In this document: piece by piece, positions 17,901 to 64,000 of the stretch | Layout: each line of letters starts with the position of its first letter | Position numbering within the stretch: the first letter of the stretch is position 1 | From: Zygnema circumcarinatum SAG 698-1b | Taxonomy: Eukaryota > Plantae > Zygnematophyceae | Reading direction: 5' to 3' | Length of the DNA stretch: 64,000 nt | Assembly: GCA_037447605.1 (NCBI GenBank) | Contig: CM074805.1 | Location: forward strand, 1,087,361 to 1,151,360 | Made by a program: the position numbers and the translations under genes | Notes under the pieces: generated by a model | The model's input: only the letters and a program-made list of their open reading frames with translations | Told to the model about the DNA's origin: nothing | Databases searched by the model: none

Positions 17901-20900
17901 AACAGTCCGATTAAAAACTGTAATGGATACTGGAATGTGACTCGCCGAAGTGTTTCCCACGTGAACACGGCACCCCACCATCACGAGATCGGCATTTGAA
18001 TTGAAGACCATAAGCTGCAGATTAAGGAACAGTTAGGAGCTGCTAAAAGAACAGGATGCAAGTACTTAATTCTCAGGTAAATCCTCAAACCTGGTAGCAA
18101 ATGCAAAAAAATCAGCCTCTAAAAACTATTCTCTCTACTATATCCGGATGTGATGACGCACCTTAAAGCCTGACGCACTCGGACTCTCCAAAAATCCATC
18201 TTCCGCTGTGACACTAAGCTTAGCAGCTTCTGCATCTGTGTTGCGCAGGATATCACCACCTAGCTTTATATCTGGAGTAATGCACGTTGCTCTCTCGAAA
18301 AAATCGAAAGGGAAAGTTGGGACATCAGAAGTGCGGAGCCCAGCAAGGGCTGTACCAAGTCGACGTGCCTGATCTGCTTCACTCAACTGCGAGCCCCTAG
18401 ATGCAACTCCTGAACCATTTGCTCCAAGTTTCTTGGCTTCCTCTTCGCCTCCTCGTGGGGCATAAGAGAATATCTGCAAAGAATCCAATGTCTGCTCAGT
18501 TGTTGCATGGACTAGATCGGACAAGTGGGTTGATCTTCAAGAGGTTGTAATAAACCCACCCATCGGGTTGGTCTCGGATAATCTAGTGCAAAGTTTGTAT
18601 CGAATTCATTCTGCATTTACTGTACGGACTGTGAGGGGCTGACTTTCGATGAACTAAGTCGACAACAGGGGGTCAAAAGACTGCTCAGGAAAATGCAGCC
18701 TGACCTGAAGACTGCCATCATCATTAAGCAGAAATACAGCACTTCGGTCCCCAGAAGGGGGCTGATATGCTCCAACGCCATCCAATCGCAATGAAGACGA
18801 GCTTGGGACCATCCTCAACTGCTGCATCTCTAGATGGTCCTTTCGAACCTGCAGGGAAGGGGATCACCAGTTAAGTCCATCCCAATATGCACAGTTTCAA
18901 GGCACATGAAGCACAGCTTTAGATAGCTCACGATATAGACTCCATCACAACTATTCACTAACAATCCCATTGTAGTTGGACAGAACATTTACAAACGCCG
19001 AGAAGCAAAGACGAACTGAGAGTATGATTCACAGAACAAGGAAATGGACGCATCTGCGGGGTTCTAGTCTCTTCTAGCCATCTAAAGATACAATTGTGTA
19101 AAAAAGCTAACGCAAAGAAAAAAGTCAGTAGAATCTTTCAACGACATGTGTGTGTTGCATACCTGAACTGCAAAAACAGAGCCGGATTGTGTCCAGACGA
19201 AAAGCCCCGACCCTGGCAGGACTTCGTGCCATTTGTGTAAGGCAACAGACCGTCCCCGAGCCTGGGATTCCTGCTCCACCTCTACGACTGCAGCACCTTT
19301 AAATGCCTGCGGAACAATCGGCACCAACAGTTGGAACTCTTTCAGCAAACAGCTTAAGCGGAAAGGTTTTCATCTGAAGGCCAGAAATGGAACCCTCGAT
19401 GCAAAAGGAAGAACTTGTAGTTTACTGTCTGTTGACCCACAGTAACAAGGTCATGCATAGTACTTTGCAAGAAGTGCTGCCCGAGATTGGAAAGGTGGAC
19501 AAGATAGTCATCTAGTTCCAAACGAGCACCAATAGCGTGCGAATGCCACATTGCCTTCTCAACAGCCAACTGGGGAAAAGTATTAAACCATCATGCACCA
19601 TATGCCGATCACTTTAATAACGACTTCGCTCATATGGAGTCTGAAGCCTCCCCAAATGACAAGCTATACACCTCCTAGGTAGTATGAGTAAAATTTCTTT
19701 TGCATGAAACAATCACTTGAGTTTACAGAAGATAGCAACCAAGATTCAGCTAGTCGTAGGCCAGGATAGTCCATGTTGGCTAACTGCCTTGAAATGAGAA
19801 ATATCTTTCAGCTCAGTTCAAAAGCTTCACATGTCATTCCCAATCACACAAAAAAATGCACCCAGTGTCTGTCAAATTGTTTACGAACTTTAATGAACGA
19901 ATGGGACCCATCGGCATAACCAAAGCAATGTAGACTCACCGTTGCATCAGCGTTCAACCGGCCAAACAAGCAGCGACCCTCCTCAAAAGCCACTACAAGG
20001 AAGCGCAATGCTGTTGAGTAGCACAGAGACGCGCCATTTCCCAGCGATTGGAGGGCCTCGGGAAAACGAATGACTGACTTGAGGACAATCAGACTGGTGT
20101 TCTCCTTCCGCGGGTTCAATGGCTCAGAGTAAAGCATCCCCTGCAACGTTTTTGGCAAGCTCAACATCAATCATCGTACCCTCGCAATCAATCAGATTCA
20201 CAGGCTTGACCACAAATAGCAATTTAAGTTTGGTTGGCACCTCCACCTAACACATCCACAACGATGGCAATAAACGATGTCAATGCGTCGGATTTGAATT
20301 ATGCCGACTACCTTTCCCCCCCTCACCCAGCTAAGGGAACATACCTGCTGGGTTAGCACAACAGCCGCGAGATGACGGCCGGTGATTGGCACTAGCACGG
20401 CATCTTGGATTGTGTCTCCATCTACCTCAAGACGCATACAGGGGCTCATGTGATCTACCGAATGGACAAAAAACTCCACAGATCGGCTGGTTACCACCAT
20501 TAGTCGAATCTGCTCCACTCCCGACGAAAGCCCACCTTGCACAGTCAAATGTTACTCCATGCTCCATGCTCCATTCTCCATGCTTAAGCTTCTGATCCCT
20601 TAAGAGCAAGGAAGTCTCACCCTTCGGTTTTGTCAGCTGCGAATGTGTCTCATTCAATTTTTCTCTTGCGAGGAGTAAAACTGACCTGTGAGTTTGGGAC
20701 CCACTGAATCCGCCGTATGTGGGCCACACCATGCAAAGCCAACTCCACTGCAAGCCGGTCGATAACCTCTCCTCCCGTGTTCAATGTAAACACTTGGCAG
20801 TCTTCAAAGCCGGCGACAGCAAGGAAGGACTCATTTGAGGGATTAAACTCCACATGTACCACTCCAAAGCGGACTGCATTTCTGCTCAACGCTTTAACAG

Positions 20901-23900
20901 TGGTTTTATCAACAGTTACTGGTGCTGCAGTAGACTGTCCAATCAACTGTCCCACATCCAACACTGTGACCTTATCTCCTTCCCCTGCTGCCATTCTGCC
21001 TCGACTGCTCACGCTCACGATAGATTTAGCCAGCGCACCATTGCTAAGACAAGCTTTCAAATCACGGTCACTAGAATACTCTGTTTTTGTTTTCATATCC
21101 AGTGAGCCACTCTTAAATGCTCGTTTTAACCGCAAAATCTCGCCATGAACAGCTGTCAGTGTATCGGCACTGAAGTCAAGATCGTCATCATCCTCCACTC
21201 CTGCTGGCTGTGTTTCCAGCAAAGCAAGAAGCCTCTGACAAGTATGAAGCAGCTTTCTCTCAACATCCATCTTCCTCAGCCACGACAACAATTGTCCATC
21301 CATCGCTATCACTCCCATTGGCAACCGTTCAACATCTGCGTCAAGCTCTGCTTCCTCTTCTTCCTCATCCATTTCCTCTGCATCAGCCCGCTTTAGGGCC
21401 TGTCTATGTGCAGACGTTTCTGCCGAAACCGATGGCCCACCCGATGAGGTAACACCAGGCAATGGTGGAGGTGCTCTAGTTGGCTGTCCTGGAAGTCTAA
21501 ATTTTCTCGGCTTTAAGGAAATACAATTTCCGGCACGAATGCCACCACTTGCTCCCGCACCACAGTCACAGAAAAACCTGCTATGGCGTGAATAAACGAC
21601 CTTATGCCCCTTATGGCAGACAGCAGCACACACAGAGCAACAGCCCTTCGATACCGTGAGATCACAGGAATAACAGAAGTACCAATGTTGCTCCATGAAG
21701 TTGTTTCCACTAGACGTATACGTACAGATTCGAGACGCTAATGCTCTCTCCCCACCTCCCAAGCCCTCTTCATCCTCAACTTCTCCATCGGTGAGGTCAT
21801 CATCTTCTTCCTCGTCAGCAGAATCTGCTAATAGAATCTGACCACCACTATTCACTGAATTAGCTGTGGTTGTTGATGCGTTCAACATGCCTGCCTCTCT
21901 CCCACGCATGCCTTGCCCAGCTGCGGTCTCATTCAGCTCTTTCTGCCAGTGACGTTCGGCAGGACCACTTTTCCCAACTCTCCCCTGCCGACCACCGGAA
22001 TCATCTCCCACTCCCTCTTGGCATCCAAGGAGTGCGGAATTGAGGACTACTAAAACTGTCTCGAGTCCTTCCAGGTGTCTATGGGACGAAGCCCTTTGCA
22101 CTTCCCTCTGTTCGGTACTCCCTCTGCTCTCAAATTCAAGATGCCCCTGTTCCGGAGCATCCAGCTGAAATTCTTCCATCAACCCCAATAGAGTTTCCAG
22201 CACTTTGGGTACAGACTCGCCTCGAGCCAATCTCGCAAGCAGAAGGAGGTAATCTCTTGCTGCCTCAGAATTATGAACAGTGAAGGCTTTTCTTACGTTT
22301 TGCAGAAGTGCATCGACCAAACACATCCGTAAGTCATCCGTCCGCCCTTGCCCTGTATCCAATCTGCTGTTTTCCTGAACAATAGCTTCTAAGATCTGCG
22401 ATGCCAATGACCGCACTTCTGGTGGGGCTTTCCAGTCAATAGGAGGTGACGACACGCGTCCAAAAGGGACTCCTCCAGAGCCAAGCAATCTGTGCTCTAA
22501 CCAAATAGCAAGTGTAGTTGAGTCCATAGTCTGAAAAACCCTTCCAATACTTCTTCTAAATATAGAGTTCGCTACACTGTCACGACCTTGTAACATCGCC
22601 ACGAGGAGTCGAAGCACCGAAACATTGGCAGCCTGACTGAAGTTGTTGTTCAGTAAACAAATTAGAAAAGAAATGTTGCCAGAACCATTGGATGGTACTG
22701 CTACAGTCATATCTTTACCAACTGGACCTGCCGTGGACTGAGCCGAACCCTCAAAATACTGCAGAAATGCAGACTGGGAGTTTGTCCAAGCTGCCTCTAT
22801 GCAGGCCATGCACTTCACCAGAACTGGATCGAATTCTTTGTTTGTAACTGCTTGTTTCTCCACCAGTTCTCGTGATAAAAGCTCAACACAACGAACGGAG
22901 TGCATATCCATGGATTGGAGAAGTTCAGCCTGTGATGCAAATAAGCGTTCCAAAATTGTTCTACTTTGCAGCCGGAGCTTCGCGAAAGGAGCTTCCTGGT
23001 ATATCTCCATGAGACTTGACAACATGCCACCATACTCAGCACTGAACATTTCCCTGAGCTCGCTTGGCCCAGAAGAAAGGCCATCTGCAGTTTCCGGATC
23101 AAATTTTCTGCGGTTACTCGATAAAAAATCAAAGGATGACTCGATTGCTCTTAACAGCAGGCTGACAGTCATTTGACATACAAGAACCAGTAATGCCTCG
23201 GAGCCTCCAGAGGAAGGGACTGCCTTGAGCAAAACATACATGAGTGACTTCCCAAGGTAACTCCGTGATTCTCCTGCAAGGGGATGTCCTGCCCCTCCAA
23301 TAACAACCCTTAAAGCGTCTGCTTGTGCCGCCTCCAGGCCACCTGGCCATAAGAGAGTCTCCACCAATCTCTCTTCTATTCCAAGTTTCTGAAACTCACC
23401 TGCAAGCCTACTTGAATCCTGTCCGGGGCATCGCAGTAGCAACATTGTAACCGCCGATTGGTCCTGTTGGCTGCCAGGAATAGCAGAGACAAGGACTCTG
23501 CCCACAGCGGATTGCCAAGCTTTGACATGCCATCTCAAAAAGCGAGAGAATAGTTGTAATAACTCCGAGCCACCCCCATGTTCAAGATACCCTTGAACAG
23601 CTCCGGCAAATTGATGACCCTGATCATCCAACTGCTGCGAACGAGGAAGTTGCAGCAGAAAGTCTGCTGCACTCTTATTATTAAGGCCAACTCCTAAAGA
23701 GTCACGTGCAATGGGAGCCTCTGAAAATAGTCTTCTATTGGCAGCACCATCATCTGATTCAGAATCTTCAGAGGCACTACCTGGGGCAGAGGTCCGAGAA
23801 TGGGATATTACCGAAGGCGATGTCGCAGAGCGACTTGTGACTGAGAGGTGCTCCTGTGTGTGGGCTTGTCGTGTGCCAATTAACAACAGATCCAAGCAGC

Positions 23901-26900
23901 ACTGCAAAACAGCTTCTAAGCGAAAATATTCGAAGGAGCCCACAATAACTTGTCCACTTTGCAGCTTCTCCAACACTGTGTGCAGGAACTTCAAAACTGT
24001 GTGCTCGAAGGAAAGGGCAGACCCTCCCTTGCTTTCACAGCTCTGCAAACAGCACGTGTAACTTGATATCATCAGGAAGGTACGTATTGCCAATGTACAT
24101 CTTGATTCTAGACCCTGGCAGTCATACAACTAGGGCTAAAACATATGGTCATAGGCATCACAATCATAACAAACGTCCAATAGTCCAATTTTACCAAATC
24201 AATAATAGTTTGAAAGTCAGACACCTGAAAACCAATACTTCATAACTGTCTCAACGAGACGTGTCTTCCTAAGAAAATGCCCTTTGTCAGGCAATTTCTC
24301 CTATAGCACAGACTTTCTGTCACCAGTAGTGAACTATTGTTATCTCACAAAGGAAATTCCTACAACCCAGTTCAACCTACAGTGGGGCGGAACTCGAGTC
24401 AGAAGGCGCACTTAATCATGCGACAGTGCCATTCTCTTGGTTAGTGCAACAATTCAATATTAATAATTCAATAATTCAATAATTTTTAATAATTCAATTC
24501 AATTCATGCAATACATTCACGGTCGTAAATCATATTGTGGCAGTTGCAACCATAAGTCACTAAGTAGGATGAGAACAGTGCATGTTAAGCACACTCTTTC
24601 GAAGCTAAAAAAACAAAATGTAGTTACTTGCCCATATATTCAATACAACTGTAAGGCAGGGTTCACAGAGATGCTGCAAAGTGCGTAATGAATAAAGGAG
24701 GCCGTTACTCGCCTGCCTCAGGATGGTAAGTTGACAGAGCATGGAAAACGACGATGAAGGATCCTGTTGTACTGTATGAGGTTCAATAAGCATCAAGCTT
24801 GTTGTCAGTTGCCAACAAATATGATGCACATATCGTTCGACCAGAATCTCTTCCTGTACATTTGGAACGAAGCTGCCAGCCAATTCCATCAGCCTCAGAA
24901 TGAGGCGTATCACATCGTTCAAGTCTCGTGCTAAGAACTTAGCAGGCAAAATGCGAGCCATAACTTCTGGTAAAGGCTCATCCATAGGATCTGCCAGCTC
25001 CACCAAAGCTTCCTCCCATTCTCCTATCCCTGATCGATCTGAGTAATTGCTGGCCCATTGGGAACTCGAGTCGTATTGCCGTAAACAGTGCTGCAAATGC
25101 CTCGGAAGCCACGCAGGGAAAGAGTCCGCATAACAGGCCATGTGTTTAATTACCAACACAAGCCTTGAAACTGGTAAGAGCCATGCTGCTAAAACTGCAC
25201 TGGACGCAGTGCCTTGTTCTTGTTCTCCATTTGCACTGACGCCTTCTCCAGAATCTGGGGCAGTGTTGGAAACAATGTTCTTTAAACAGGAAGTGACACA
25301 TGTCCAAACCTGAGTCTTCCCATCTACACTGAGAATGTGAAATGCCATAAGCAAAACCTCCAGAAGAAGCACCGAAGGAATTTTGGCAAGGGTGCCTTTC
25401 AGCCCTGTCACGAGTGCTGCTTCAGCAATTTGCAGCATGGACTGACAGTATTTCTGCCATAGCTCAACTATGAGAGGATCGTCCTTGTTGCCTGAAGGGT
25501 CTGTAGGATGTTTGGGAGAGTTATGGGAAACATATCCCCGAGCAGACCTCTGAATGAGGAGTCTAGCAAGAAGAATTAAAGCTGCTGACGGCCTTTGAGA
25601 AAAACGCTCGTCGCTGCAATACTTCAACCCACAAGATAAGAGTTTCTGAGCCAGGTGAGCTTCCAGAACATCAGTCAAAGCACACCTAACCAGGAGTGCT
25701 TCCAGAAAATGGAAGGAAGCAGAAACTAAACCCGCTACTTGGTTATCCGCCGGAGTCTCTCCACAGTCTTCTGCAGGATGAGCGTCAGGTTCCACTCTCT
25801 GCTCTGCAGATTCAGAACGTTTCCTTTTTACTGACTCTAGAAAAGTAAAAGGAGTGGTTGCCAGTTGAAGAATGGCATCCAAATGACGTGCTTGGATCTG
25901 CTGTTTAGCAGCAAGAAAAACATCTTGTTCCGAATCTGGTGCCGAAATGAACTCGCTGAAGAATACAAGGATCTGCTGAGCAGCCTGAAGATATCCGACC
26001 TCAGCTCCATGCTGGCTACAGCTTCCTCTTTTCTTTGGAGATGTCCCCTCCTCTGAATGCCGACTAGGTTCCGCAAAAAGATCCCCAAACCAGAGATCGT
26101 CTTCCTCACTTCCATGAGAGCCGACAGATCCTTCCTGAGAACGACTGCTAGAGTCCTCACTATCTGGTTGCTCTCTGTCCGCAACCCTGTATTCAAACCC
26201 GATTTGCTGCTTCCAATCCTCATAAAACAACAAGGAAGTTGATATCAAATTGTCTAGCCACGGTCTTTCAGGAGGAAACAACAGCCTGACTTGTTCCTCC
26301 ATGGTCTTCGGCACCTGAAGCTGCTCAAGCCTACTGTGAAGGGAGTGTGTACTGGGCACAACTATCCCTCTTTCAGCTGGATTAGCAGAAACCAGCACCC
26401 CCTTCATTGTCCGAGTGACTGCATATATATCCTGTAGAAGGTCTAAGAGGTGTGACACTGCATAAGGCGTACATATTATAGGTCGAGATTTAAGCATTGT
26501 GCCGTCCACATCTTCGGGAATCTGCCTATTCATCTGGTTTTCCAGGGCATCATGTGATAACCCCAATTTGACCAAAATGGCCATTACAAGTTCCACACGC
26601 ATGTTCTGGAATGTGCTCATGTTAGGCAGGCATAACTCCATCATCCTTAGCACGTCGTCAAGTAGGGTTGGAACTGAAGACAGATTATGAGCAGCAGCCA
26701 TCGGCAGCCCATATAGTGGAGGAACTGCGTCCATAAGGGCTAGAAGCTGCGACATAGTTTCAACATCTCCTGCCCAAAGACTCCCTGATGCTACACTTAC
26801 TAACAACTTCAAAATGCTAGAGCATAAATCCAGTGCCGTGTTAGGTAATGAACCATCCTTTGAAACGTCACCATCAGAAAACTTGGAAAATTCCTTGTCA

Positions 26901-46150: not shown

Positions 46151-49100
46151 ATGGAGACCGAGAGTGTCGTGTCTGCGGAGGATGCCCACGACAGCCCTGC
46201 CTCAGAGTTTGCTGGATTTCCGACTGCACAATTGTCTACCGGCCATGGCGACTCTGACTCGACCTCGTCTGTCGTTAAGACAAGGGAGCGTCCCCTTCCA
46301 CCGCTTCCTCCCATTCCTGAGCTGCCGACCTGGCAGATGGTTGAGTCTGGCAAACCCGGAAGTTTGAGCTACCGTGCACGCATCTTTGAATGGAAGAACC
46401 GCAGAGAAGTCTCCCCGTGGCATGGCATACCTCTATACACGGGAAGTAGTGCATTGCATGTTGTTTGCAAGACCCCTCGCGACTCAGGCTTCATCTTTGA
46501 AGTGGCTCGAGATGAGAACTTCACTCCGTTGAAGTTGAGAAAGCTGCCTCAACAACCGGCTTATTACACTTGTAATGCCCCCTGCCATGTTGGGCTTCTC
46601 CCACAGACATGGGCTGACCCGGGTGCAGCCTCTGATGGCATGCAGCAAGATGGCAACCCCTTCGAAGTTTTAGACATAAGCAGGCGTGCGGCACGAACGG
46701 GTCAAGTGTATGCGGCAAAACCGCTTGCAGCATTTGCTGTGATTCATGGCGGCACAACTCTTTCATGGAAGATCATTGTGATTGCTCTTGATGATCCGTT
46801 GGCTGGCGAACTGAAGAACGTGAATGATGTACAGGAGAGAATGCCTGATGCTCTTGCAGAAGTGCGGGAATGGCTGCGCACTTGCATGTGGAGAAACTCG
46901 GGTATACCCCTCAACTTCTTTGAAACAATCCTTCGATCATGACTTTGTCGTGTCTCGTGATCTCGACTGCTTGATTTTTTTTTTGTTTGCATTTTAAATT
47001 GAACACACAGGGGAGCCCAACCGGTAGAATTGCAGGCCAATCCTCCCGTTGGTTTTTGTTTTTCAATAAATACCTTTCATTGTTGAAAATAGAATGTGAA
47101 ACGCAGCATGCCATATCTGTCCTAGACACAGCGTCGTGATCGTTCCCTCGTTCATTGGCGTGAGCAGGCGATCCAGATGTATACTTTGGCCTCGATGGCA
47201 CTGTTGGAGACTGTCAGCTGGCAGTGACAGTGATTGCAAAAGCGCACAAAGCCTGGCTGCGGAAGTTTGGAGATAAAGAAGGGCATCGAAGCCGGGGGGA
47301 TCAGCAGTTGAACAGCATCAAGTCGTCCAAGGGACGTCCCCAGGACACGTTACAGCGTGCATACTCTGTTCACCAGAGCCAAATTGGACTATCGAAAGTA
47401 TCCTGCTGTGAGCCCAAGAAGCCGAACTCCGAGTCGCAGTGTGGCTTGCTTTGGGTTGAGGGCTCGGAAAGGCCATCATGTCTTTCGGGAGTTCCACCTC
47501 CAGTGAACCCCACGCCTACAAGTTCACAGTCTCCCGCTTCACATATGCTTGTTGAAGCTGGAGTTGGGCCAGGTCCAGGCGGAATAGGCTGCTGGAAAGG
47601 CATCATAGGGAAGCTTGTCGGGGGAATCCGGTTGGACTCAGACTTGTGCTCCTCGTCGATCAGTGAAGGTCCACACTCACCAAAGGCGACGGCAGCGTCC
47701 CATATCCACCAGCGTAGAAGGCCTCCACCGCCTCCAAGGCTAAACCCTGAGATAGCAAAGCAGGAGCCTGCAGGACGCGTGAGTGAGATGCAAGAGCCGG
47801 CTGTTCGACTGAGTTCACGCCACCAAAGTTTACGGATCCATGCCGGCTCTGACTTTGTGGGTGACTCCCTTCCAACCCCAACTTTAAGTAGGAGCAAAAC
47901 TTTCTCTGAAGGTCAGTTTGCAGCTCAAAAAAGATCGAGGGCACCACTTGGCATGGGAGTTACAGGCTTTGCCTTGCCAGAAGATGCTGACACGAATGAC
48001 GGTGTCAAACATCAAGGTCTGCAAGGACTTTCTGGGCCGAGCCAAACAGTAGCGAGCAGGAACAAGGTAGGGACTTTTGATCCAAGGGCAGTTATTAAAG
48101 ACGAGAATGAAATAGGTCCCAGTTTAGATCGCAGTCAAACGATCTCCGAAGGTCAGTACGCTGCTCAAAAACAGGCAAGGGGGAAAGGGAGCATGGATGA
48201 ACCTCATAGTTTTACTAAAAACCTGACAGGTGGTACATCAAGGGAGAATAAGTTATTGATGCAGACTACAGCTGGGATATCTTTCTCTGCTGCTGATGCG
48301 TCCGAGCGGAGGCTATCAACTCGATCCGGTACACTAGGTAAAATAGAAAATAGTCCGGGCAGGGTAAGGCCAAGTCTGGACCGGAGTCAGACCATATCTG
48401 AAGGACAGTTTGTCAATCAGAAGCAGTCGACGACGAAGAGGTTTGACTTAGACCTGCCTGGTGGAGTTGTGGTCACTGAGGAGACGGGGGCATACGTTGA
48501 AGATTCAGAATCCGCACAATTTTATTTCATGACATCCCAGCCACAGCCGTTTGACCAGGCCACATTCCCAGCGAGCAACAACAGCCTTCCGCCATTTCCT
48601 CGACAGAATAATACAGGGCATTCCTATGACAGCAGCAAACTCAAGCCTAGTCTAAGTAGAAGCCAGAGCTTTTCAGAGGGTCAATCTGCAGCAGCAAGGC
48701 AGTCGAGGATTAGTTACAGTATGGGATTGATGGGAGAAGCTTCCAGTTCAAGTATAGGAGGTATGAATGAGGGAGATCTAGTTGTTCTGGAATCTATGCC
48801 TACAGCTTCAGAAGCTCGTCGAGGGCCTACGGCTGGGGGAAGGGAAGTGCCATATGCATCACGATTACATGCGGATGAAAGCCCTCGTGATAGTCCGACT
48901 GAGTGGAAATTTGTTGCACAGCAGTCTGTTCGAAGAGTGGATCGTGAACAGGCAGGTCGACGCCAGCGAATACAAGAGGATGGACCTGATGGGGGAGAGC
49001 CTGCTTGGGACGAGAGGCGATACGCAGGAACATCGGGAAAGCAGAAAGTGACAGGGAGTCTGCAGGGGCCCCCAGCAGTGTTGCCCTTGACACAGACTAC

Positions 49101-49833
49101 AGAGGCCATCTTGCGGCAAAGAGAGAACCTCACCCGAAAATTGGAGGAGAGTGCACGGCGGCTGGCGGCAGAGGAAGATTCAGAAAGGATTGGAGCACGT
49201 TCTCGGGTGAGAGCAGGTGACTATGCATCCGTAGGAAGGCAACTTCATGACAGAGCGGAGGGTTCAGGGAGTTCAGTTAGCATGTATGCACCAGAATTCA
49301 AGGACGCCGAGAGCAGCAGGCCAGTCGACTGGGCTACCTGGTTGGGACGAGGAGAAGGGCGAGCTGCCGAAGCTCAGAGCTCTCTTATTTCACATCGCTC
49401 TTTACAGGCGATGATACGGGAGAGTGCATGGTCACAGCATCAGCCAGCAGGCGCAAGCCTGTACAGATCAGGAGCAACCCAGGACTTGTTCAACTCTTCT
49501 CGGCAAGCTAGTCATCCCGCGGAATCGCTGAGAACGGGGGGGGAAGCTATGGACATAAGATGGGAAGCCGATGATTGGAAGGGAGGGGGTGAAGGAGGGG
49601 TCAGGTATGCTGAAAGCGGGGAAATGGGTGTAGGAATGGCCAGTCAGAATGGCCCTCGAAGCGGGCACGTGCCCGCAAGAGAAGGGATGATTAGTGATAA
49701 ATCAGCTGATGAAGAAGTCACTCTGTCTATAAAAGAAGATGATAGTGCGAGTAGTGTGTCAGGGGTAAGGCTTAGTCTTGGAAGGCCCGCAGCGTTTCTT
49801 AGTGTACCAAGAGAAGTTTTGAGAAGGCTATGA
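46151..49833 (+). CDS. Family I inorganic pyrophosphatase-like protein, probably catalytically dead, with a long repeat-containing C-terminal tail
   Basis: Exon 46151-46901 plus exon 47168-49833 (phase-1 GT-AG intron). PPase scaffold motifs: VSPWHGIPL, FEVARDENFTPL, GLLPQTWADP, KPLAAFA, WKIIVIALDDPLA, EVREWLR, YFGLDG...AVTVIAKAHKAW. The 3' end could alternatively splice at 49765. Confidence 0.85.
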
Positions 49834-50864: not shown

Positions 50865-53800
50865 ATGATTTCACAGATCTTCATGCTGTCGCCTCGTGGC
50901 GACAACATCATCTTTCGTGACTGTATGTTTGCGGTCTCGCTCTCTCTGCTTCTCTGCATCGTCTCTTCCTCGCTCAATTCTTTTTTGATTTACTTTTTCT
51001 TACTCTCCTTCTCTCCATCCTACTCCTTTGCCTCTCGAAACGCAAGCAAGTGCTGCAAAGTTGGATTCGTAAAGATAGAAGTTTAAAGAAGTGAACGCTT
51101 TCGGCTTCCCTAGGCGCTTTGTCATGGAACATTAGTCGAGCCTGAAGCGGTTTCTATAGGTCTCTTCCGTCTGCGAGCAGTTGCAATACATAATGATGAT
51201 GCTGCGGGGGCATTCTGGCTGTCAATTACCTTTTTATTATTTATTAATTTCTTCCTAGAACAGGATATATTCTGAAGAGCTTTGTTACTGGCGTAAGAGT
51301 TTCAAACGCAACATTTTCCACTGGTCAGGTTATTAGAAAGCTAGTATGCAAAATGAGAAGATCCAATTGGATTGGTTGAATTATTTACACCCCTTGCATA
51401 CGCTCGCCTTATGATGAAACACCTAGTGCTTGCCATCTGCGAGGTCGCAATCACCGTCCTGTTTTTGGACTGCAACTTACATCTAGCCTGACAACGAAAC
51501 CAGTTATGCAGGGCAAGTACATGGAATAATGCGATCACAAATAGGAGGAAGGAATGTAGTTGTTGCTGGAACGGCAACTAAACTCATGTGGCATGCATGT
51601 CATCCCATGGCCTATTTCATCGGAACCTTGAAAACTCCAGCTTGATGCTTACTTGTCTCTTGTTTGCAGACCGGGGAGATGTGCCTAAATCGAGTGCAGA
51701 AGTATTCTTTCGTAAATTTAGGTTCTGGAAAAGTGACGAAGGCGAGGATGCTCCTCCCGTTTTCGTGAGTATTTCTTTTTTGTTTGTTTGTTTGTTTGTT
51801 TGTTTGTTTGTGTGTTCGATCTTCTTCGTGGAGATCTCCTTATGTGGATGGTTTGGCGGACAATAGCTGACGTGTATTTGTTCAATAATTGCTAATGCAA
51901 AGGTAATAAGCTGTTTTATCCTGTTCACAAGGACCACGCCTGCACTACTCAAGCTGGCGTTTTTGAAGGCTCCGGTTGGGTATCAAATGGGCTGGTAGTT
52001 TACCCAGACATCGTGTCCTCATTTTCTCCCCGTTTGTTTTTCACCGTTTGCTGCAGAATGTGGATGGAGTAAACTACTTGCATGTGAAAGGAGCTGGCCT
52101 TTTGTTCGTGGCCACAACTCGTTACAACGTTTCACCTTCTTTGATTCTGGAGCTTCTTCAACGCATTGCCCGGGTGGCAAAGGATTACCTCGGCATTCTT
52201 AATGAAGATTCCCTCCGAAAAAACTTTGTTTTAGTGTACGAGCTCTTGGATGAGATGTTGGTAAGTGCAGCCCGACATTGGTTGTCATTTTGGCATCACG
52301 ACTTGCAAGTGTTCAGAAGTGTTCATACTGGGTAATCATCTACCTATTTAATTCATCGTGCCTTAAATTGATTGTGCTTGACTTGGGATAGGATTTTGGC
52401 TATCCTCAAAGCACCTCTACAGAGGCATTGAAGTCGTTTGTCTTCAACGAGCCTGTGTCTGTGGATTCTTCAAGGGTGCTTCCTGCTTCGCTAGCTGCTG
52501 CCTCAATATTCATGGTATTTAGTTCGATCCCAAAAACCTCTGTTTACAATAGCCAACGAAGCGTTTTCATGGCTGTCTACGTTCATCATCCCAAATAGAG
52601 GTGGCCTCTGTTTCGTCGGTCCAGTTTTTGCTTCGTGACCATTCTTATCCCGTCCACGGCTGAGCTGTCCTTAGGCTCTTCTGCTGCATTCTGCGAAAAA
52701 AACAGCATGAAGGTGCTGACTTCTGGAAAGCAGAATGAAAACATGCTGTGGCAGCATGGAGCCAAGCGTGTTCCCGGAACTGCTGTCACCAAGTCGGTGG
52801 TGGCCAATGACCCTCCGGGCCGCAAGCGGGAGGAGGTGTTTGTGGACGTTATTGAGCGCATCAGTGTCACCTTCAATTCTAGTGTACGTGTCTGTTACTG
52901 TTTCTATCTCTTTCTCTTCGCTTTGCCTCTCCCTCTCATTCTTTTTGTCATTATCTCTTTCAATGGCTTGTTATCTCTGCTCTCTTTTTTTTTCTTTCTA
53001 TTTCTGTTTCTGTTTCACTCCCCCCCCCCCCCCCTTTTTTTACTCTCCCTTTCTAATTATTCCTTGCTTTAGTACCTGGTTCTCTATCAGATGGCAGACA
53101 CAGGCTGGAGGTTCTATGATTGAATGGGAAATTCAGAGCGTTCTGCTGGTTTGTGGGTGCTTCAAGCAGGGATACATATTAACATCAGAAATAGATGGTA
53201 CTATTCAAATGAAGAGCTATCTGACCGCCAATCCAGAGATCCGATTGGCCCTAAATGAGGACCTTGGGATTGGCCCAAATGGATCGTCAGGTTTTGGTAT
53301 GTTCAAGCTCAAATCCCAAATGAGACATATTGTCGTAACTGAAGCTGATCTTTTGGAGTCTACTAGAGCTGACCTTGCAGCCTAATTACGTATTGTCTAG
53401 GCTTAGTAATATACGTTTTTCTTCCTTTGCAGCTCCTGGAGACAGTAGGATGAAGCTCTTAGATATGGACGGAATAAATTAATCAAGTGGGTAATGTTGC
53501 AGGGAGTGTTGGAACGGTGCTTTTGGACGATTGCAATTTTCACGAGAGTGTGCGATTGGACGAATTCGACTTGGATCGCACATTGACTCTGGTGAAAGAT
53601 TTACTTTGATTACATTGTGGTCTCACTCCTCTTATGGATTATGCAAGGAATGGCTGCGTTACTCTTGCAGCAAGAGTTGAAGACTTTCTAGATCCATTGA
53701 CATATATATTGGCATATAAGGAGGCCAGAGGGTCCTCCAAGCAGGAGAGGCAATCAAAATGGGAAAGGTAGTTTTTATATTTTTGGTATCCAAATGACAT

Positions 53801-56408: not shown

Positions 56409-59400
56409 TCAGAGCCGATCGGCTTTCAAAACCCTCGCCATCCAATCTGCTGGATATGGGTGGCCTTTCTTCTTTGCTGAGGGACATTTGGCTGTTCGCA
56501 CCAACGATCGCCACTTGTCCTGCAACGTGCATGCATGTATTTAGTAAAAGAAGAAAAGCTGCACATGTAGCTGAAGATTTCGTCACCATGAAGGAATTCC
56601 ATGGTTCCTATGACCACCGAACTTTCAGCTTGCAACAGTGGTATATTTGGCTCAGCAGAGAGGCAACCAAGTTAGCAGGTTTCTCACCTTAAGGTCGACC
56701 GGTGTCCTGTGTCGATCGTGAAGGAACCAATTGCGCTTCAATTCCTTCCACCTGTGGTCCACAGCATGCCTTGCATTAGAGAAAACAAGAGATTTTAAAG
56801 CCAGCAGGAGACGAATGCCCATATCCAAGTGTTCCTGAATTTTACAAATAAGCCTTAGATGGCGTGAAAAGTCATACTTCTCCTATCACTGAACCCAACG
56901 TGTGCATTACCGTCCTTTTCCAAGTTGCTCGACCCCTGCAATGAGTGTTTCAACATCTCTTTCCCTGAAATGTTGCATTGCGCGCCTCTTTTCCGTGTCT
57001 GAATTTCGTACGCGTTCCCGTTCTCCACGCGAATAATCGGCTGCGTTCACCTCTCCGTCCAACCTTTGGCGAGTAGGCTTTTTTGGAAGTCGAGTTACAC
57101 CGCACGTAGCTTTCTCTTTCACAGTGTCTGCAACAGTTTCTACAATTTTACCTTTCACAGGATCGCCAAGCGGGCTCGCACTATCACAGGCAGTGGTCTT
57201 TCGGCCTGGGGATTTAGAAGCACTGCCACATTTCCGGCCAGCTTTCTCTGCACGATCTGACTTTTCTGCTCGATTGCCATCATTGTCAACCATTGAGGCG
57301 AGGTGGGAACCGCCTAAGCTGATGTCTTCAGTTTCTATGTCAAAACGAAATTGATATCCATAACTTGATTCGCTGCCTTCTTCAGCTGCACAGATTTGAC
57401 ATAAAGACAAAGGAGCAGCAGCTCAAGTCACAGGTCAAACGAGTCACTTGTTTATCTTGTGCATATATTTTACCAGAAGGTTCAGCAAAGCATATCTTGA
57501 AAAGGATAGCTGGTGATGCTTCACTGACAACAAGCACGTTGGATAGTTGCAAATGACAGACGTGGACTTCTGACGAGATCTGGAATTTGTGACTTACAAT
57601 GTATGACAGGCGCGTGTCCGTTACACGTTGTGTAATTGTCACCTGGTAACTCTCTGGTGTCATCTTCGTTTTCAGGACGCTTTCCTTTGACCTTTATGAT
57701 ATCCTCATCTGCAACAAACATGGCTTCGAGATCAGCCATTTGAAAGGTTTGCCTATTGAGAAAAGACGCTCATCTCAGCATTATTGCCAAAAGACAGAAA
57801 CTCAGAGATGAGAGGCCATCACGCTGAAAAGAGCGAGGTGGACCGTACCTACAGGTGTTGACTGCACTGGACTCTTTAGTCGTGAAGGTTTCTTGGTGAT
57901 ATCTTTCTTCCCTGCACTTTTAGCCTGGTTATGGACTGCATCCAAAGGATGCGGAAAACCTTGTGCGTCTGCATCGTGAAACTCATTGAGATCATTGCCA
58001 CGATTTCCGTGCAGCAGGCAAGGGTGTCCTTCTTGCATTTTTGTTGTTTCTTCACCATGTTGGAAGTTCGAGGGTGGAGGACGCTCAGCATTTGGATGAC
58101 ACGAGCATCTGTTATTCAGGCGAATGGTATCATGATGACAATTCTGCTCGGATAAGAGCCCCGTCTCCATGGTTTCTTTTGACTTCAGTGCTTCTCGAGT
58201 CGCCAGAAGTTGCGCTTGAAATAAATCATTCCACAAATCCTGACCAGACTGCTCGTAGTTGTAACGTGAATCGCTTACCAGCCTATTTCTTCGATTTTCT
58301 ATTGCAACCTCAGCTTCTTGCAGGGCCGTTGGTAACGGATTACCGTGAAGGGTACCGTTTAGTTTGTGTTCGCTCATACAACATGCTTGCATCGAATCCA
58401 GATTCTTCTCCGGCTCTGTTGCAGGCTCGTCACTGCTGAACACGGAAGTCAGTGAATCAAGTGGCAAGTTTCATGCACTTGCCTGGTCTTATTCCATGAT
58501 AGATCAACTCAAATGCATGTGAAGGACAAATACTCTGCATTTCCCTAAGAGTTTTTTGCACTAAATAATTACGAGCTGGAGCATAGCAACGAGCTGATGC
58601 CGGCACAAAAACCCTAAACCAGTTGCATTGGAGGACAGTTTTCGAAAGCAGGCCGAAGCATTGACTTCGAGACGGTCATATGAAGCAAACGAATCTGGCA
58701 AAAGCTTACCGCGTGCTTTGACATTTCTCTGTATTCGTAGGCACTGAGGCATCAAAGCTGGTGGTTTTGTTGACTGGCAGTTCCGCTGATAGTTCATCAG
58801 TATTTATTGTGTCCTCTCGTCGGTCCGTACTCGTATCACGCCCTCTTGAAGTGCACTCACTGATGTGCTGGCGTGGAGTTGGAGAAGCCAGAGAGAGAAG
58901 GTCAAGGCGATCGCAATGCCAAACAACTTTTATGAGAACTAGAGTTCTTACGCCAAGTTACAAGTTCCAAATCATGTCGCAGGGGAGTCTTTGAAGTCGT
59001 AAGGTAAACATAGACGAATCGAAAAACTTTCTGTGTATTTATTGCGTTTCAGATACTCTTAACAGAGTAGGTCATTGTACCTGAATCTGTTTTTTCAAGT
59101 CAAATATTTCATTGAGAAGCTCTCTGTGATCCGTCAGCTGAGCATCTGCCTCTGCCTGCTGCCGCTGACCGATGCTGTTCACAGTTTCAAAATGTCCTGC
59201 ATCATGGAAAGCACGAAAATAGTTACGGTGCATGGAAGGATTGCTTGCTCCTCACTGCCGGGATCACATTTTTCCAAAATTGACTCCAGGATTTGGTACA
59301 GCATTTGTATTGATACTCTTTCATCTCAAAGTTCCGTCCTGAACTCACTTTGCATGTCTAACTCCAGTTTTTCCAGCCTCCCGTTGAACTGCAAGCTGTA

Positions 59401-59938
59401 ACATGGAAATGCCAGCAGTTTCAATTAGCTGAGCCCCATGCAAGTCCTTCCAATTGCAGCGCGTCGAGGGAAACATTGAAAGTGAGCAGATAGTACCTCG
59501 CAAAATAAATTCTTCCAGCGGAAGAATTCTGCATGAAATTCCGGCCAATGCACCATAATGCTATAGACAAGGAATACCATCGGCACTACTAGCTTACATG
59601 CATGCCTTCAGATTGTCTTCAGTACTCCTCAACTCTTGCTTGAAAGTCGCTGCCATCTCCGAAAAGAGCTCCTGAATCGGCAGCATATGAGAACGGAGAG
59701 GGCAATGCACCTTCTTCTTGAATTCAGCCAGCATTTTTCCAATGGTCTTCAGGTCGCTGCATTTTTCAAAGATTGGCAGTTCATCGTCAATCAAAACAAC
59801 AGAAGATTGCGATATGAAGCGATTTTGAGCAGCAAGGATTCCATCTCTTCAACCAAATGAGATCACCACATCAATAGGAGTTTTCGAACCTTACCTGGTT
59901 ATGCCAATGCCTTCATCGTCGTCAATCCAAAGATCCAT
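56409..59938 (-). CDS. Telomere repeat-binding protein, TRFL/TRP1-like (C-terminal telobox Myb plus Myb-extension, N-terminal coiled coil)
   Basis: The last three exons (..56911; 56751-56688; 56519-56409) splice to QHFRERDVETLIAGVEQLGKGRWKELKRNWFLHDRHRTPVDLKDKWRSLVRTAKCPSAKKKGHPYPADWMARVLKADRL*, i.e. telobox VDLKDKW plus Myb-ext. Upstream exons splice in phase back to MDLWIDDDEG at 59938; the 5' model is less certain. Confidence 0.88.
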
Positions 59939-60654
59939 CCTTGTGAACACTAGTTAATTTAAATCCCCGTTATGATATCAGTGTAGCTATGGATATTGTA
60001 GGCGTTCTCCGCTCAACGCACATGAATCATAGGAAAATCCTGCAACGTTCAGCTTCAAGCAGCTCTGTAGGGAAGGGGTCAGGCTGCTCCTGAAGCTCCC
60101 CTCCAAAAGCGACCAGCGACCTACCCCCCTGCAAAGCCGAAGTTCCAAGTTCCCTTTCCCTGCAAGCGCCGCAAAAATATGATTGGTTCGGCGCCGTCGG
60201 GCTGCCCTGGTCAGAAAAAAAACAAAACGCGCATAAAAAACCTTTCAGCGAATCAAAGTTTACCACGTTGCGAACAGAATCACTTTTTCCATGGAACAGG
60301 GAACAGGGAAAGTTTTTTAGGCGGGAATTTTTGCCCGCGGCCGTTTTTTGAGACTGCGGACCGGCCACTTGCGGAGGACCTGCAGTCGACCGGCCTGCCC
60401 TGTTTGCTCCAAGCTGCTGCATATGATTCAAGGAGAGGCGAGAGCGGGCAGATGTGCGGATCATATATCGGAGAAAATTCGCATTCTAACCCTGAAGGTG
60501 CGTTCATCGAATGTCTGTGTTTCTCCTGCTTCAACGAACGATGTCCAAACCTTGGCAACTGACTGAAAGAATGATGTGTGGATTGCTGGCTTGGAAAATG
60601 GTGCGAAGTCTCCGGTTAAAGTAGCAGGCAAGGACCAGGGCGACTAGGGCGAGT
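59939..60654. promoter_or_regulatory. Bidirectional promoter between the telobox-Myb gene and the SYCP2/ASY3-like gene
   Basis: 716 nt between divergent ATGs; E2F-like ATTCCCGCC (reverse strand) at 60320-60328; short GAACAGG tandem near 60295-60310. Confidence 0.6.
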
Positions 60655-63600
60655 ATGGAGAAAAGTGCTCCTTGTGCAGAGGACAGCCAGAAGCTGAGTG
60701 GGATTAAGGTATCTGCCGACCAGTCAAATGAGGAAGATCAGGGTCATGAGATCTACAAAAAGTTCAAGGAGGTGAGAAAGATCTTGGTTTATACGCCAAA
60801 ACGAGAAATTCCATTGCATTTTTGTGTACTTTTACTTCTTTATCTGTTTTGCTTCAAGGATGCAATTGACACATGCAGTAATCCTTCGTTGCAGCTCCTA
60901 TGGGGAAGTTCGTTGGACTATGCAGCGCTTCAACAGAATCTGAAGTTGCTTCGCAGGCGTTTGACAAAGTCTGATCATCAGCCGGAAGAACTTCATCATC
61001 TATGTAGGGTAGTGCCTCTGCTTGGAAATGTTTATGATATTCTCTTGCAGAAGGATTGCAAGTCCAGCGAGTATGTTGAATCTATGGTTCAACTCTGCAT
61101 GACTATTGAAGATCTGAGTGAAAATAAAGAAGGTGAGAAATTTCTTACAACTGTAAAATGATAATTCTGTGATGTTTGCACAGTTTTCGTGATGCAAGTT
61201 TTTTCTAGTTCCAGAAACACGCATGAAATAGGATGCTCAATTAACAGAGGCAGAAAGAAATAAACAATATGTGACCGCTTGCAATCTTAGTCAATGTGAC
61301 AGGAATCCAGCCACTGAAATGCAATTATTTTCATTGCAGGAAAAGCACAATGCGGAGACGTATTCATCTCCAGACTAAGTGCATTAGCCGTCTCTAAAGT
61401 TACCGATTTGAAGCTTCAACGTACAATTATAGAAACCCTTTGCTGTCTCGTGACACAGTCAATCAAGAATCAGCGAGCTTTGCTAGCGAACATGAAGCAA
61501 TGGTGAGTTGATGAAGCTTTTTAAGTATGAAAAGGACAAAGCAGGGAATTATCTTTCATCGTTGGCCTGCTTTTAATTGAACAAAATAGCTCCTGTCTGG
61601 GTGACGAGTACGCGGGAAGCTTCTGTCCCTTGGGCTAACGTCGTAAGGTTTCCCCTTTCTGGCTTGCAGTGAATCGATGATCAAGGTTTTGCTGCCAGGT
61701 GCAGGAGATTACCTGATCCAGGCTACCATCTTCGAGATCTTGTACAGGTGAGTGTATCTGAGAATTCTTATCATTCGCTTTACAGCCTTGGCAGGAAGAC
61801 GGTTGGGGCGCAATCGGGAAAGGGACAATGGGTCAAGGAGATAGAAACAACGTGCACAGCCTATAGGTCGAAAAGCTGTGCGCTCGATGTCATGGAGGGA
61901 CTATTGCACCTCTACAGGAAAAGCTGCTGTTTCTCAAATTGTATACGGAGTACAAGAGTGAGCGCATGAAATCTGTCCTTTAGAACACAACTGTCTCTAC
62001 AGATTGAAAGTTTCTGCTTCTTTGCTTCGAACTGGTTAGGAACTTTGGATTCTCCCGTGTCTGAGGCAGGAATCAAGTTCTCATCAATTATAGAAAGGAT
62101 GTCCATGGAAATGAACATAAAAGTACTGCTGAGGAACAGCGTATTGGCCGCTTATAAACAATCGTTGTTCTACCAACAGAGTATCGAGGAAAACACCCCA
62201 GCTCGTCGAGGACATGTTTCAAGATGGCCCTGTGAAAGCAGCTTTGCGATCCTTACACAAGCAAAAGAAACCAGATTTGCTTGAAGAGATTCGGAATCTA
62301 GTGATATTGTTGAACGAAAGCCAAGGCCCGCTGCGTAGGTGAGGACGGCCTTGCTTTGCTGCCTCGTTTCTGAATAGACAGCAAATTTCTAGATGTGCGT
62401 GTATTGGTCCTACGCTTTAAAGAAGACCCGAGTCCCTCATCCAACTACTGCGCTCTGTTTTTTTCCAAAAAGGCAATAACCGACGGCCTTGAACTGCGCG
62501 TTGTGACTTGGGCAGCGTATACTCGTTTCTTTTGTCGAAAGTTACCATCAACGGGCGAGACGCCACTTGTGCCAGGGAGAAGTGGGTGGATTTTACAAGC
62601 GGACTCACTACAAGTCACAATCATGTCAGCTTCTATGCAAGATTGGAGGATCCTTCGTCTGAAGCTGTAAGCGTCCAAAATTTTTTCCCTGCTATTAAGA
62701 AATCGGTATAAACCAACTTTTCTAAATTTGCATCAAGACGAGGTTGATTCCTTTTTAATAAAAAACACGTCTTTTTATTCTTGCAGGCTGACGACGGAGC
62801 TTCATTAATTGACATTCCTTACTACCAAATTCATCAGATTGGCAGTAAGCTTTGACCTTACAAAAAGAAAATAGAAAGGACTGCAGTCATTGAGATATTG
62901 GACAATCCTGGTAGCGAGTTGTCCTTAAGCAGGCTGCATCTATTGATGAGTGATCTATGAATTTATTTTGCATTTGACAGTCAACTGTTATTTCCTCCAA
63001 AGAAATCATGACTGTGACCTACATGAGTAACTGCCGCCTGGGAGCTGAAACTACTCAGCACAAATATGACTGATTTGCGGTTCTCGTTTTGATAAGCCTT
63101 GACATTGTTGCCAACAACATTTTTTCTGACGGTAACTCGTTTTTGCCACAGGATATTCAACTCGGAATTTAGAAATTGTGACCTACGAGCCCATTCTCGA
63201 CGAGTTGACTTCAAGGGTACGCACGCAGAATAGTCTTGATCCTGTCTTATACTTTCTGGACACGAGACCTCTCGTTTCACTTGTCTTGTTTTCTTTGTTA
63301 CTACTACTGAATTTGTTTTAGAAACTGAAACATGCTAAGCTGACAGTACGAGACCTTCCGTCTGAGTACAGGCCCCTGCTAATGACAAAACTGAAATCCA
63401 CATCTTGATGGAGTTTGCTACTGAAGGTATGGCGGAACATCGGTGAAGCTGATTGCCATTTGAAAATAGAAGTCGTTTTAAGATGTAGGTTGGATTTTTC
63501 TGCTCAAGCACACTAGCAACATTCCCGTTAAACAGTCTGGTATCCGGCACTGATTCGTTCACAGTTTTTTCAATTTGCAGATTTAAAAATTATCGAAAGC

Positions 63601-64000
63601 CGCCTACTTTGCCGAATCAAGAACCAAATGCGTCAGGTGTGGCATCACATCCCAGGTGCTGTCCTTAGGACAAGTTGCCCTTTTGGGTTACCTTGAATCT
63701 CAAAGATCCGAAATGATCATGCCTGTTCAATGACGTCGGTTCCCCTGGATTGTGTACAGATTAACGATATTAATTCATCTCAGAAAGGTTCATTAAATTC
63801 CTCAGAAACAGGAGGTTCTGATAGGCCTACGAGGAAAGCGTCCATTGGCATCATGCCGGACTTCAACAGAAGTTATCCAAGGCCCCAGCAAGTACAGAAT
63901 ACGCCTCAAGCCACAGCGACACAGGCTGTCAATTTGGGTTACCCAGTGCCAAAAACACGCAATGCTAAAGCTGGAACAAATACCGATGTGGAAAACGGCA
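60655..64000 (+). CDS. SYCP2/Red1/ASY3-family meiotic chromosome axis protein (ARM-like + PH/Spt16M-like + closure motif); 3' end beyond the window
   Basis: Eleven in-phase GT-AG exons give ...LLPGAGDYLIQATIFEILYRVSRKTPQLVEDMFQDGPVKAALRSLHKQKKPDLLEEIRNLVILLNESQGPLRSVYSFLL...EKWVDFTSG...HVSFY... This parallels recalled SYCP2 segments (DAGDYDLQVGITEALCRM...RVFTFP...FWIDFN...LSFY). It is followed by TRKASIGIMPD, resembling the ASY3 N-terminal SRKISIGVMAD. Confidence 0.82.

Follow-up and report, generated by a model that had tools for sequence, protein, structure and literature searches.

The window, by which the whole 64-kb stretch of analysed DNA is meant, ends within a putative ASY3 gene on the plus strand. 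The gene model was built by joining open stretches at GT..AG borders. Exons 1–10 lie between positions 60655 and 63636 (+) and comprise 1140 nt, or 380 codons, which run in phase with no stop codon. All ten introns start with GT and end with CAG, and their lengths range from 120 to 432 nt. Their 5′ ends read GTGAG in five cases and GTAAG in two, with GTACG, GTATG and GTGTG occurring once each. The first-pass annotation had described ten short exons that splice in phase to a domain of ~370 amino acids; the exons and their phase stand, whereas the size is corrected to 380 amino acids. The end point it gave, 63714, falls within intron 10, and the domain in fact ends at 63636. It had also named five motifs in a particular order, all of which were located in that order on the plus strand by translating the three plus frames from 60600 to 64000: GAGDYLIQATIFEILYR at 61698, EEIRNLVILLNESQG at 62283, SVYSF at 62514, KWVDF at 62580 and VSFY at 62625.

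The products of the exons were set against the published ARM-PH region of ASY3. The reference was ASY3_Archaeplastida.fasta, the curated alignment in File S3 of Tromer et al. 2021 (bioRxiv 10.1101/2021.02.06.430040; Open Biol 11:210049). It consists of full-length ASY3 proteins, including those of Chara braunii, Klebsormidium nitens, Marchantia, Physcomitrella, Selaginella, Azolla and many chlorophytes. The ASY3 of Spirogloea muscicola was taken from File S2 of the same study. Identity figures were counted by eye from the printed alignment as opposed to being computed. Read by eye in this way, the exons fall in order along the ARM-PH region of the published proteins, and the identities to Physcomitrella in successive blocks are 12/16, 10/17, 15/27, 14/27 and 27/51.

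Exon 1 (60655..60771, +) contributes 39 codons, made up of the start codon and a weakly conserved acidic N-terminal tail. Its ATG is found at 60655, an in-frame stop lies just upstream of 60625, and the exon closes on the donor GTGAGA. Exon 2 (60895..61132, +; 79 codons plus 1 nt), bordered by the acceptor TTGCAG and the donor GTGAGA, would supply the first helices of the ARM-like subdomain and contains VVPLLGNVYDILLQKD and IEDLS. The first of these sequences corresponds to Physcomitrella VVPVLAKVYDTLLQKD, with 12 of the 16 residues identical by eye. Among the long exons, exon 2 is the least conserved. The central ARM-like repeat is assigned to exon 3 (61340..61502, +; 163 nt), in which GKAQCGDVFISRL ... 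IETLCCLVTQSIKNQRALL matches Physcomitrella GKEACGTYFISRL ... VETLCVLITRCPANQRALL. Within the same exon, GKAQCGDVFISRLSAL is aligned with GKEACGTYFISRLLAV of published ASY3 and LQRTIIETLCCLVTQSIKNQRALL with LRRATVETLCVLITRCPANQRALL. Exon 4 (61670..61747, +; 78 nt) carries the last ARM-like helix, LLPGAGDYLIQATIFEILYR, and aligns with Physcomitrella LLSRCGDFQLQASIVEISYR and Klebsormidium LPSCGDFLTQASILEILYR; its LLPGAGDYLIQATIFEILYRVSR is placed opposite LLSRCGDFQLQASIVEISYRLSR of published ASY3. The end of the ARM part is identical to that of Spirogloea at ~18 of 26 residues (by eye). Exons 2–4 therefore follow the ARM part of ASY3 in order by eye, as is expected of an ARM-like helical subdomain.

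The PH/Spt16M-like subdomain is spread over exons 5–10, which can be matched one after another to the PH part of the Marchantia, Physcomitrella and Chara proteins. Exon 5 (62180..62338, +; 159 nt) holds a linker and a helix leading into this subdomain, KKPDLLEEIRNLVILLNESQGPLR, and aligns with Marchantia QKPDLLSEIKEIVFLLNESMGPNR. Exon 6 (62516..62666, +; 151 nt) encodes the first strands, which include SVYSF, KWVDF and NHVSFYA. Together, the end of exon 5 and exon 6 form an ungapped block of 51 residues by eye, running from KKPDLL to KWVDF. The identities over this block are 27/51 for both Marchantia and Physcomitrella (53%), 26/51 for Chara, 24/51 for Selaginella and 19/51 for Klebsormidium. 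Single PH-like strands are assigned to the next three exons. Exon 7 (62787..62844, +; 58 nt) contains SLIDIPYYQI and aligns with Klebsormidium ALVDLPYGRIL and Physcomitrella EIFDILYIDV. Exon 8 (63152..63216, +; 65 nt) begins its strand with LEIVTYEP and aligns with Marchantia LEMVVQD and Physcomitrella LEITVNG, and exon 9 (63372..63426, +; 55 nt) contributes TEIHILMEFATE. The C-terminal helix of the subdomain, DLKIIESRLLCRIKNQMRQ, lies in exon 10 (63581..63636, +; 56 nt; flanked by the donor GTGTGG and the acceptor TTGCAG), which aligns with Marchantia FLERVLPSLLNSHITGR and ends the folded module. The stretch that starts with LEIV in exon 8 and closes with exon 10 has 53 residues; by eye, the same number separates LEMV in Marchantia from the conserved R that precedes the closure motif.

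The positions of the introns provide a further check on the model. Introns 2, 3 and 5 each interrupt a codon, and the restored residues are G, C and S, which are conserved in ASY3 within ‘GK..CG’, ‘.C..LF’ and ‘RSVYS’, respectively. At the border of exons 3 and 4, for example, the restored residue is the conserved C of Physcomitrella AHCLHLF and Marchantia VSCLKLF. Given that the order of the exons follows the published ARM-PH region and that the split codons fall on conserved residues, the exon model is not a product of chance. The reading is also continuous from exon 4 to exon 5 (ILYR|VSRKTPQ, compared with Physcomitrella ISYRLSRQDPE), and so the intron of 432 nt hides no exon.

Exon 11 (63760..64000, +) starts in phase 0, and its reading frame continues without a stop up to the final base of the window. 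The first 80 codons of the exon represent the start of a disordered middle region enriched in S/T/P/Q, with 75% of the residues being polar or disorder-prone. The core of a candidate closure motif for the HORMA domain of ASY1, RKASIGIM, is located 24 residues into this exon, at 63832–63855 (+), and a linker of about 27 residues separates it from the end of the PH-like subdomain. The pattern RK.SIG has a single match in the six frames of the 64-kb window, which is the one at this site, and 0.14 matches are expected per shuffled window. The Arabidopsis protein starts MSDYRSFGSNYHPSSQSRKISIGVMAD and reads RKISIGVM where the window has RKASIGIM, and the consensus of seed-plant ASY3 at the closure motif is rKISIGImVd. 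In the same alignment columns, just past the PH domain, Azolla has RKASIGFIP, Selaginella KTSIGIVP and Marchantia KSSMGIIP. In the Arabidopsis protein, the HORMA domain of ASY1 is bound by residues 2–50, and the stretch treated as the closure motif in alignments spans residues 8–35 (West et al. 2019). RKASIGIM thus lies right after the folded head, the place at which a closure motif is expected, and is a candidate ASY1-binding motif.

The order of parts in the window gene, namely ARM-like helices, a PH-like domain and a closure motif of the form [RK]K.S.G[IV], is common to the ASY3 proteins of non-seed streptophytes, including Marchantia polymorpha, Physcomitrella patens, Chara braunii, Spirogloea muscicola, Selaginella, Azolla and Klebsormidium. 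Segment lengths agree with those in these proteins, and sequence identity in the best blocks is about one half. Over the blocks compared, the sequence is nearer to Chara, Spirogloea and the land plants Marchantia and Physcomitrella than to Klebsormidium. Mammalian SYCP2 (5IWZ) and yeast Red1 likewise have an ARM and PH/Spt16M-like head, with the closure motif directly after it and a disordered middle. The similarity of SYCP2 to the window protein is too low for a single exon to find it in Pfam or the PDB. The link is instead made through published profile comparisons, and it was by this means that Tromer et al. 2021 linked the ASY3 ARM-PH region to the SYCP2 head (PDB 5IWZ) as a homologue.

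In light of these comparisons, the window gene is very probably an ASY3, which belongs to the SYCP2/Red1 family of axis cores, with its ARM-PH head kept; about the 5′ two-fifths of the gene is in view. This agrees with the original proposal of an ASY3 bearing a SYCP2-type ARM-PH module, in that the exons align to the ARM-PH region of ASY3 and a closure motif of the ASY3 type comes right after it. Tromer et al. 2021 define a SYCP2-type axis core by the ARM-PH head together with a C-terminal coiled coil; the present gene is known from its 5′ part, up to position 64000. As far as the sequence goes, the layout of ARM-PH head, then closure motif, then disordered region is the ancestral one, as in Red1 and SYCP2.

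It is very improbable that the gene is instead a SYCP2-type paralogue with a non-meiotic or altered job. Precedents for this are the KKT17/18 proteins at the kinetochores of kinetoplastids and the short second copy of ASY3 in Chlamydomonas. The family has duplicated repeatedly, with ASY3 I–II in Chlamydomonas among the cases (Tromer et al. 2021), and only one locus is in view here. Against this, the ASY3-type closure motif is kept nearly letter for letter, and the conserved blocks are as near to the ASY3 of land plants and Chara as those proteins are to one another. Moreover, a second copy is not known from the same genome.

Searches of public collections were performed exon by exon. With queries of 25–79 residues, too short to reach kin so remote, eight exons returned no SYCP2_ARLD or SYCP2_SLD match and nothing relevant from Pfam at E <= 10. 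Exons 2, 3, 5 and 6, likewise short as single queries, found no SYCP2 chain, 5IWZ included, when searched against the sequences of the PDB. For exon 2, a word search gave no candidates, and phmmer against 1.84 billion proteins gave no true homologue. The two spurious phmmer matches, one to a TPR protein of bacterial origin and the other to a junk tandem repeat, were discarded as repeat artefacts on the basis of Pfam and inspection. The 168-residue open reading frame over exons 1 and 2 corresponds to no recorded gene with that product, and the collections searched contained neither a transcript nor a protein of the window ASY3 gene. As the exon-wise sequence searches yielded no match, the gene is apparently absent from the available public protein sets.

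Some hints as to the fold were obtained from single exons. In the ESM Atlas, the entries nearest to exon 3 were KAP, Arm, ARMC9_ARM, V-ATPase_H_N and CFA69_ARM, all of the ARM type, at 0.93–0.96, a recognition above the mark set by the tool; exon 6 gave no usable match there. AlphaFold2 predicted three helices for exon 2 alone and three strands for exon 6 alone, both at low confidence (pLDDT 63 and 61, respectively). Chou–Fasman averages taken exon by exon were uninformative. These predicted folds agree with a layout of helices followed by strands, which is weak evidence for it.

The lack of any match in the public protein collections searched could suggest that the gene is unannotated and little expressed, as might be the case for a decaying relic in an alga without meiosis in which selection has gone. 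Such a relic is very unlikely, as the 380 codons in ten exons contain no stop or frameshift, all 20 of the splice signals are intact and the conserved residues of the family have been retained. That an unrelated protein with helical repeats and a beta domain should resemble SYCP2/ASY3 by chance is barely credible: the single exons have no Pfam or PDB match, but the ungapped block of 51 residues is 53% identical, more blocks follow in the same order, the segment lengths match and the closure motif is where it is expected.

Taken as ASY3, the window protein would be a member of the plant SYCP2/Red1 axis cores, which act as scaffolds of meiotic chromosomes, and would itself be placed on the meiotic axis. 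From what is known of the family, the HORMA domain of ASY1 would wrap around the closure motif in the manner of a safety belt, and ASY1 would thereby be captured. Further downstream, a short hydrophobic motif may bind the C-terminal winged helix of REC8 on the head of SMC1. In Arabidopsis ASY3, this REC8/SMC1-binding motif (CIM) occupies residues 196–204 and has the form L..L..IL. The CIM is expected ~170 residues past the closure motif, and the window stops 46 residues past it. The C-terminal coiled coil would form 2:2 tetramers with ASY4, which would stack into the filament of the axis. Arabidopsis ASY3 and rice PAIR3 have a similar closure-motif core, and ASY1, REC8 and ASY4 are the partners expected to be common to these proteins and the window protein.

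These seed-plant proteins differ in the head. Seed-plant ASY3, as in Arabidopsis ASY3 and rice PAIR3, is without the 380-residue ARM-PH module encoded by exons 1–10 of the window gene and starts about 17 residues ahead of the closure motif; across seed-plant proteins this distance is about 15–30 residues. The background on which the first-pass annotation had relied, with Arabidopsis ASY3 lacking the module and beginning just before the closure motif and with Red1 and SYCP2 possessing it, is thus correct. It is conceivable, though on balance doubtful, that the loss in seed plants was a clean cut in which the ten 5′ exons were dropped and translation came to start from the counterpart of exon 11, in place of a gradual decay. 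This reading is drawn from the head coinciding with exons 1–10, from exon 11 opening 24 residues before the motif and from seed-plant proteins starting at a similar distance from it.

The timing of the loss has been described previously. Tromer et al. 2021 reported that ARM-PH was lost in Spermatophyta only, and these authors kept a separate profile, ‘ASY3_Spermatophyta_loss_ARM_PH’. The same survey already contains ASY3 proteins that bear ARM-PH, namely those of Chara, Klebsormidium, Spirogloea, Marchantia, Physcomitrella, Selaginella and Azolla. In its Table S2, Chlorokybus and Mesostigma are scored as having no SYCP2-type gene; as the window sequence is nearer to Chara, Spirogloea and land plants than to Klebsormidium, it is doubtful that the present alga fills this gap. 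ASY3 has since been detected throughout Viridiplantae, charophytes included (Thangavel et al. 2023). The suggestion that the head was lost later in plant evolution is therefore right, but it is not novel. Its novelty had been said to fall if a published survey listed this orthologue, which has happened in substance as the layout is published; the exact orthologue is not in the files. Six peptides from the window had no occurrences in 200 files of Tromer et al. 2021, amounting to 21.8 million characters. Since the peptides are absent from these files and ARM-PH-bearing ASY3 is reported there, the orthologue is new but of a published layout. The gene is real but ordinary, being the older form of ASY3 that the 2021 survey had previously seen in other algae, mosses and ferns.

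The presence of the gene had also been taken to imply meiotic capacity, which is suggestive only, as one intact gene is no proof. An intact gene of ten exons that has kept the conserved residues of its family argues for selection and hence suggests a working meiotic axis. The intact ASY3 gene can accordingly be regarded as a modest sign of the capacity of the alga for meiosis. With it, the green organisms that have a SYCP2/Red1-type head on ASY3 include a further streptophyte alga, and a gene seemingly missing from public protein sets now has a checked exon model. The occurrence of ARM-PH in the ASY3 of non-seed plants is worth restating, as recent papers still call the head ‘missing in plant ASY3’. 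An alga or bryophyte with an ARM-PH-bearing ASY3 may be a possible system in which to ask what the head does.

The minus strand of the window carries a series of very long ORFs between positions 2945 and 27000. These ORFs are parts of a single giant gene for an E3 ubiquitin ligase of the BIG/UBR4 type. Pfam domains are recognized at three points along this strand: an E3_UbLigase_R4 domain (2948-4048, 1e-33), a ZZ finger (14145-15959) and a UBR box (20653-24129). The GC skew is negative across positions 1-30000, with which a long minus-strand gene is consistent.

On the plus strand, a gene of two exons occupies positions 46151-49833. The first exon matches the Pfam Pyrophosphatase family (2.7e-15), and the second ORF is a low-complexity sequence of 869 residues, for which a word search returned no matches at E <= 1e-20 among 8000 candidates. 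Further along the same strand, intron-split ORF pieces at 51976-53385 resemble, by eye, the mu subunit of an adaptor complex. The mu-like stretches include …VNYLHVKGAGLLFVATTRYNVSPSL… and …GYILTSEIDGTIQMKSYLTANPEIRLALNEDL…, and a Pfam scan of a single piece (51976-52332) gave no match.

A minus-strand gene at 56409-59938, the two largest ORFs of which have no Pfam match, lies beside the meiotic axis gene ASY3. The start positions of the two genes (59938 and 60655) are approximately 716 nt apart on opposite strands, and thus the genes are arranged head to head.

Chlorokybus and Mesostigma have been scored as being without any SYCP2-type gene (Table S2 of Tromer et al. 2021). In the supplement of the preprint of that survey (files 12 and 199), the Mesotaenium ASY3 model begins near a closure-like motif, …GGRKRKSGTIG…, resembling the type bound by the ASY1 HORMA domain, and is without the ARM-PH head, the SYCP2/Red1-type N-terminal module. 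By contrast, the ASY3 of Spirogloea possesses this head; the model for Mesotaenium could be a truncated one.
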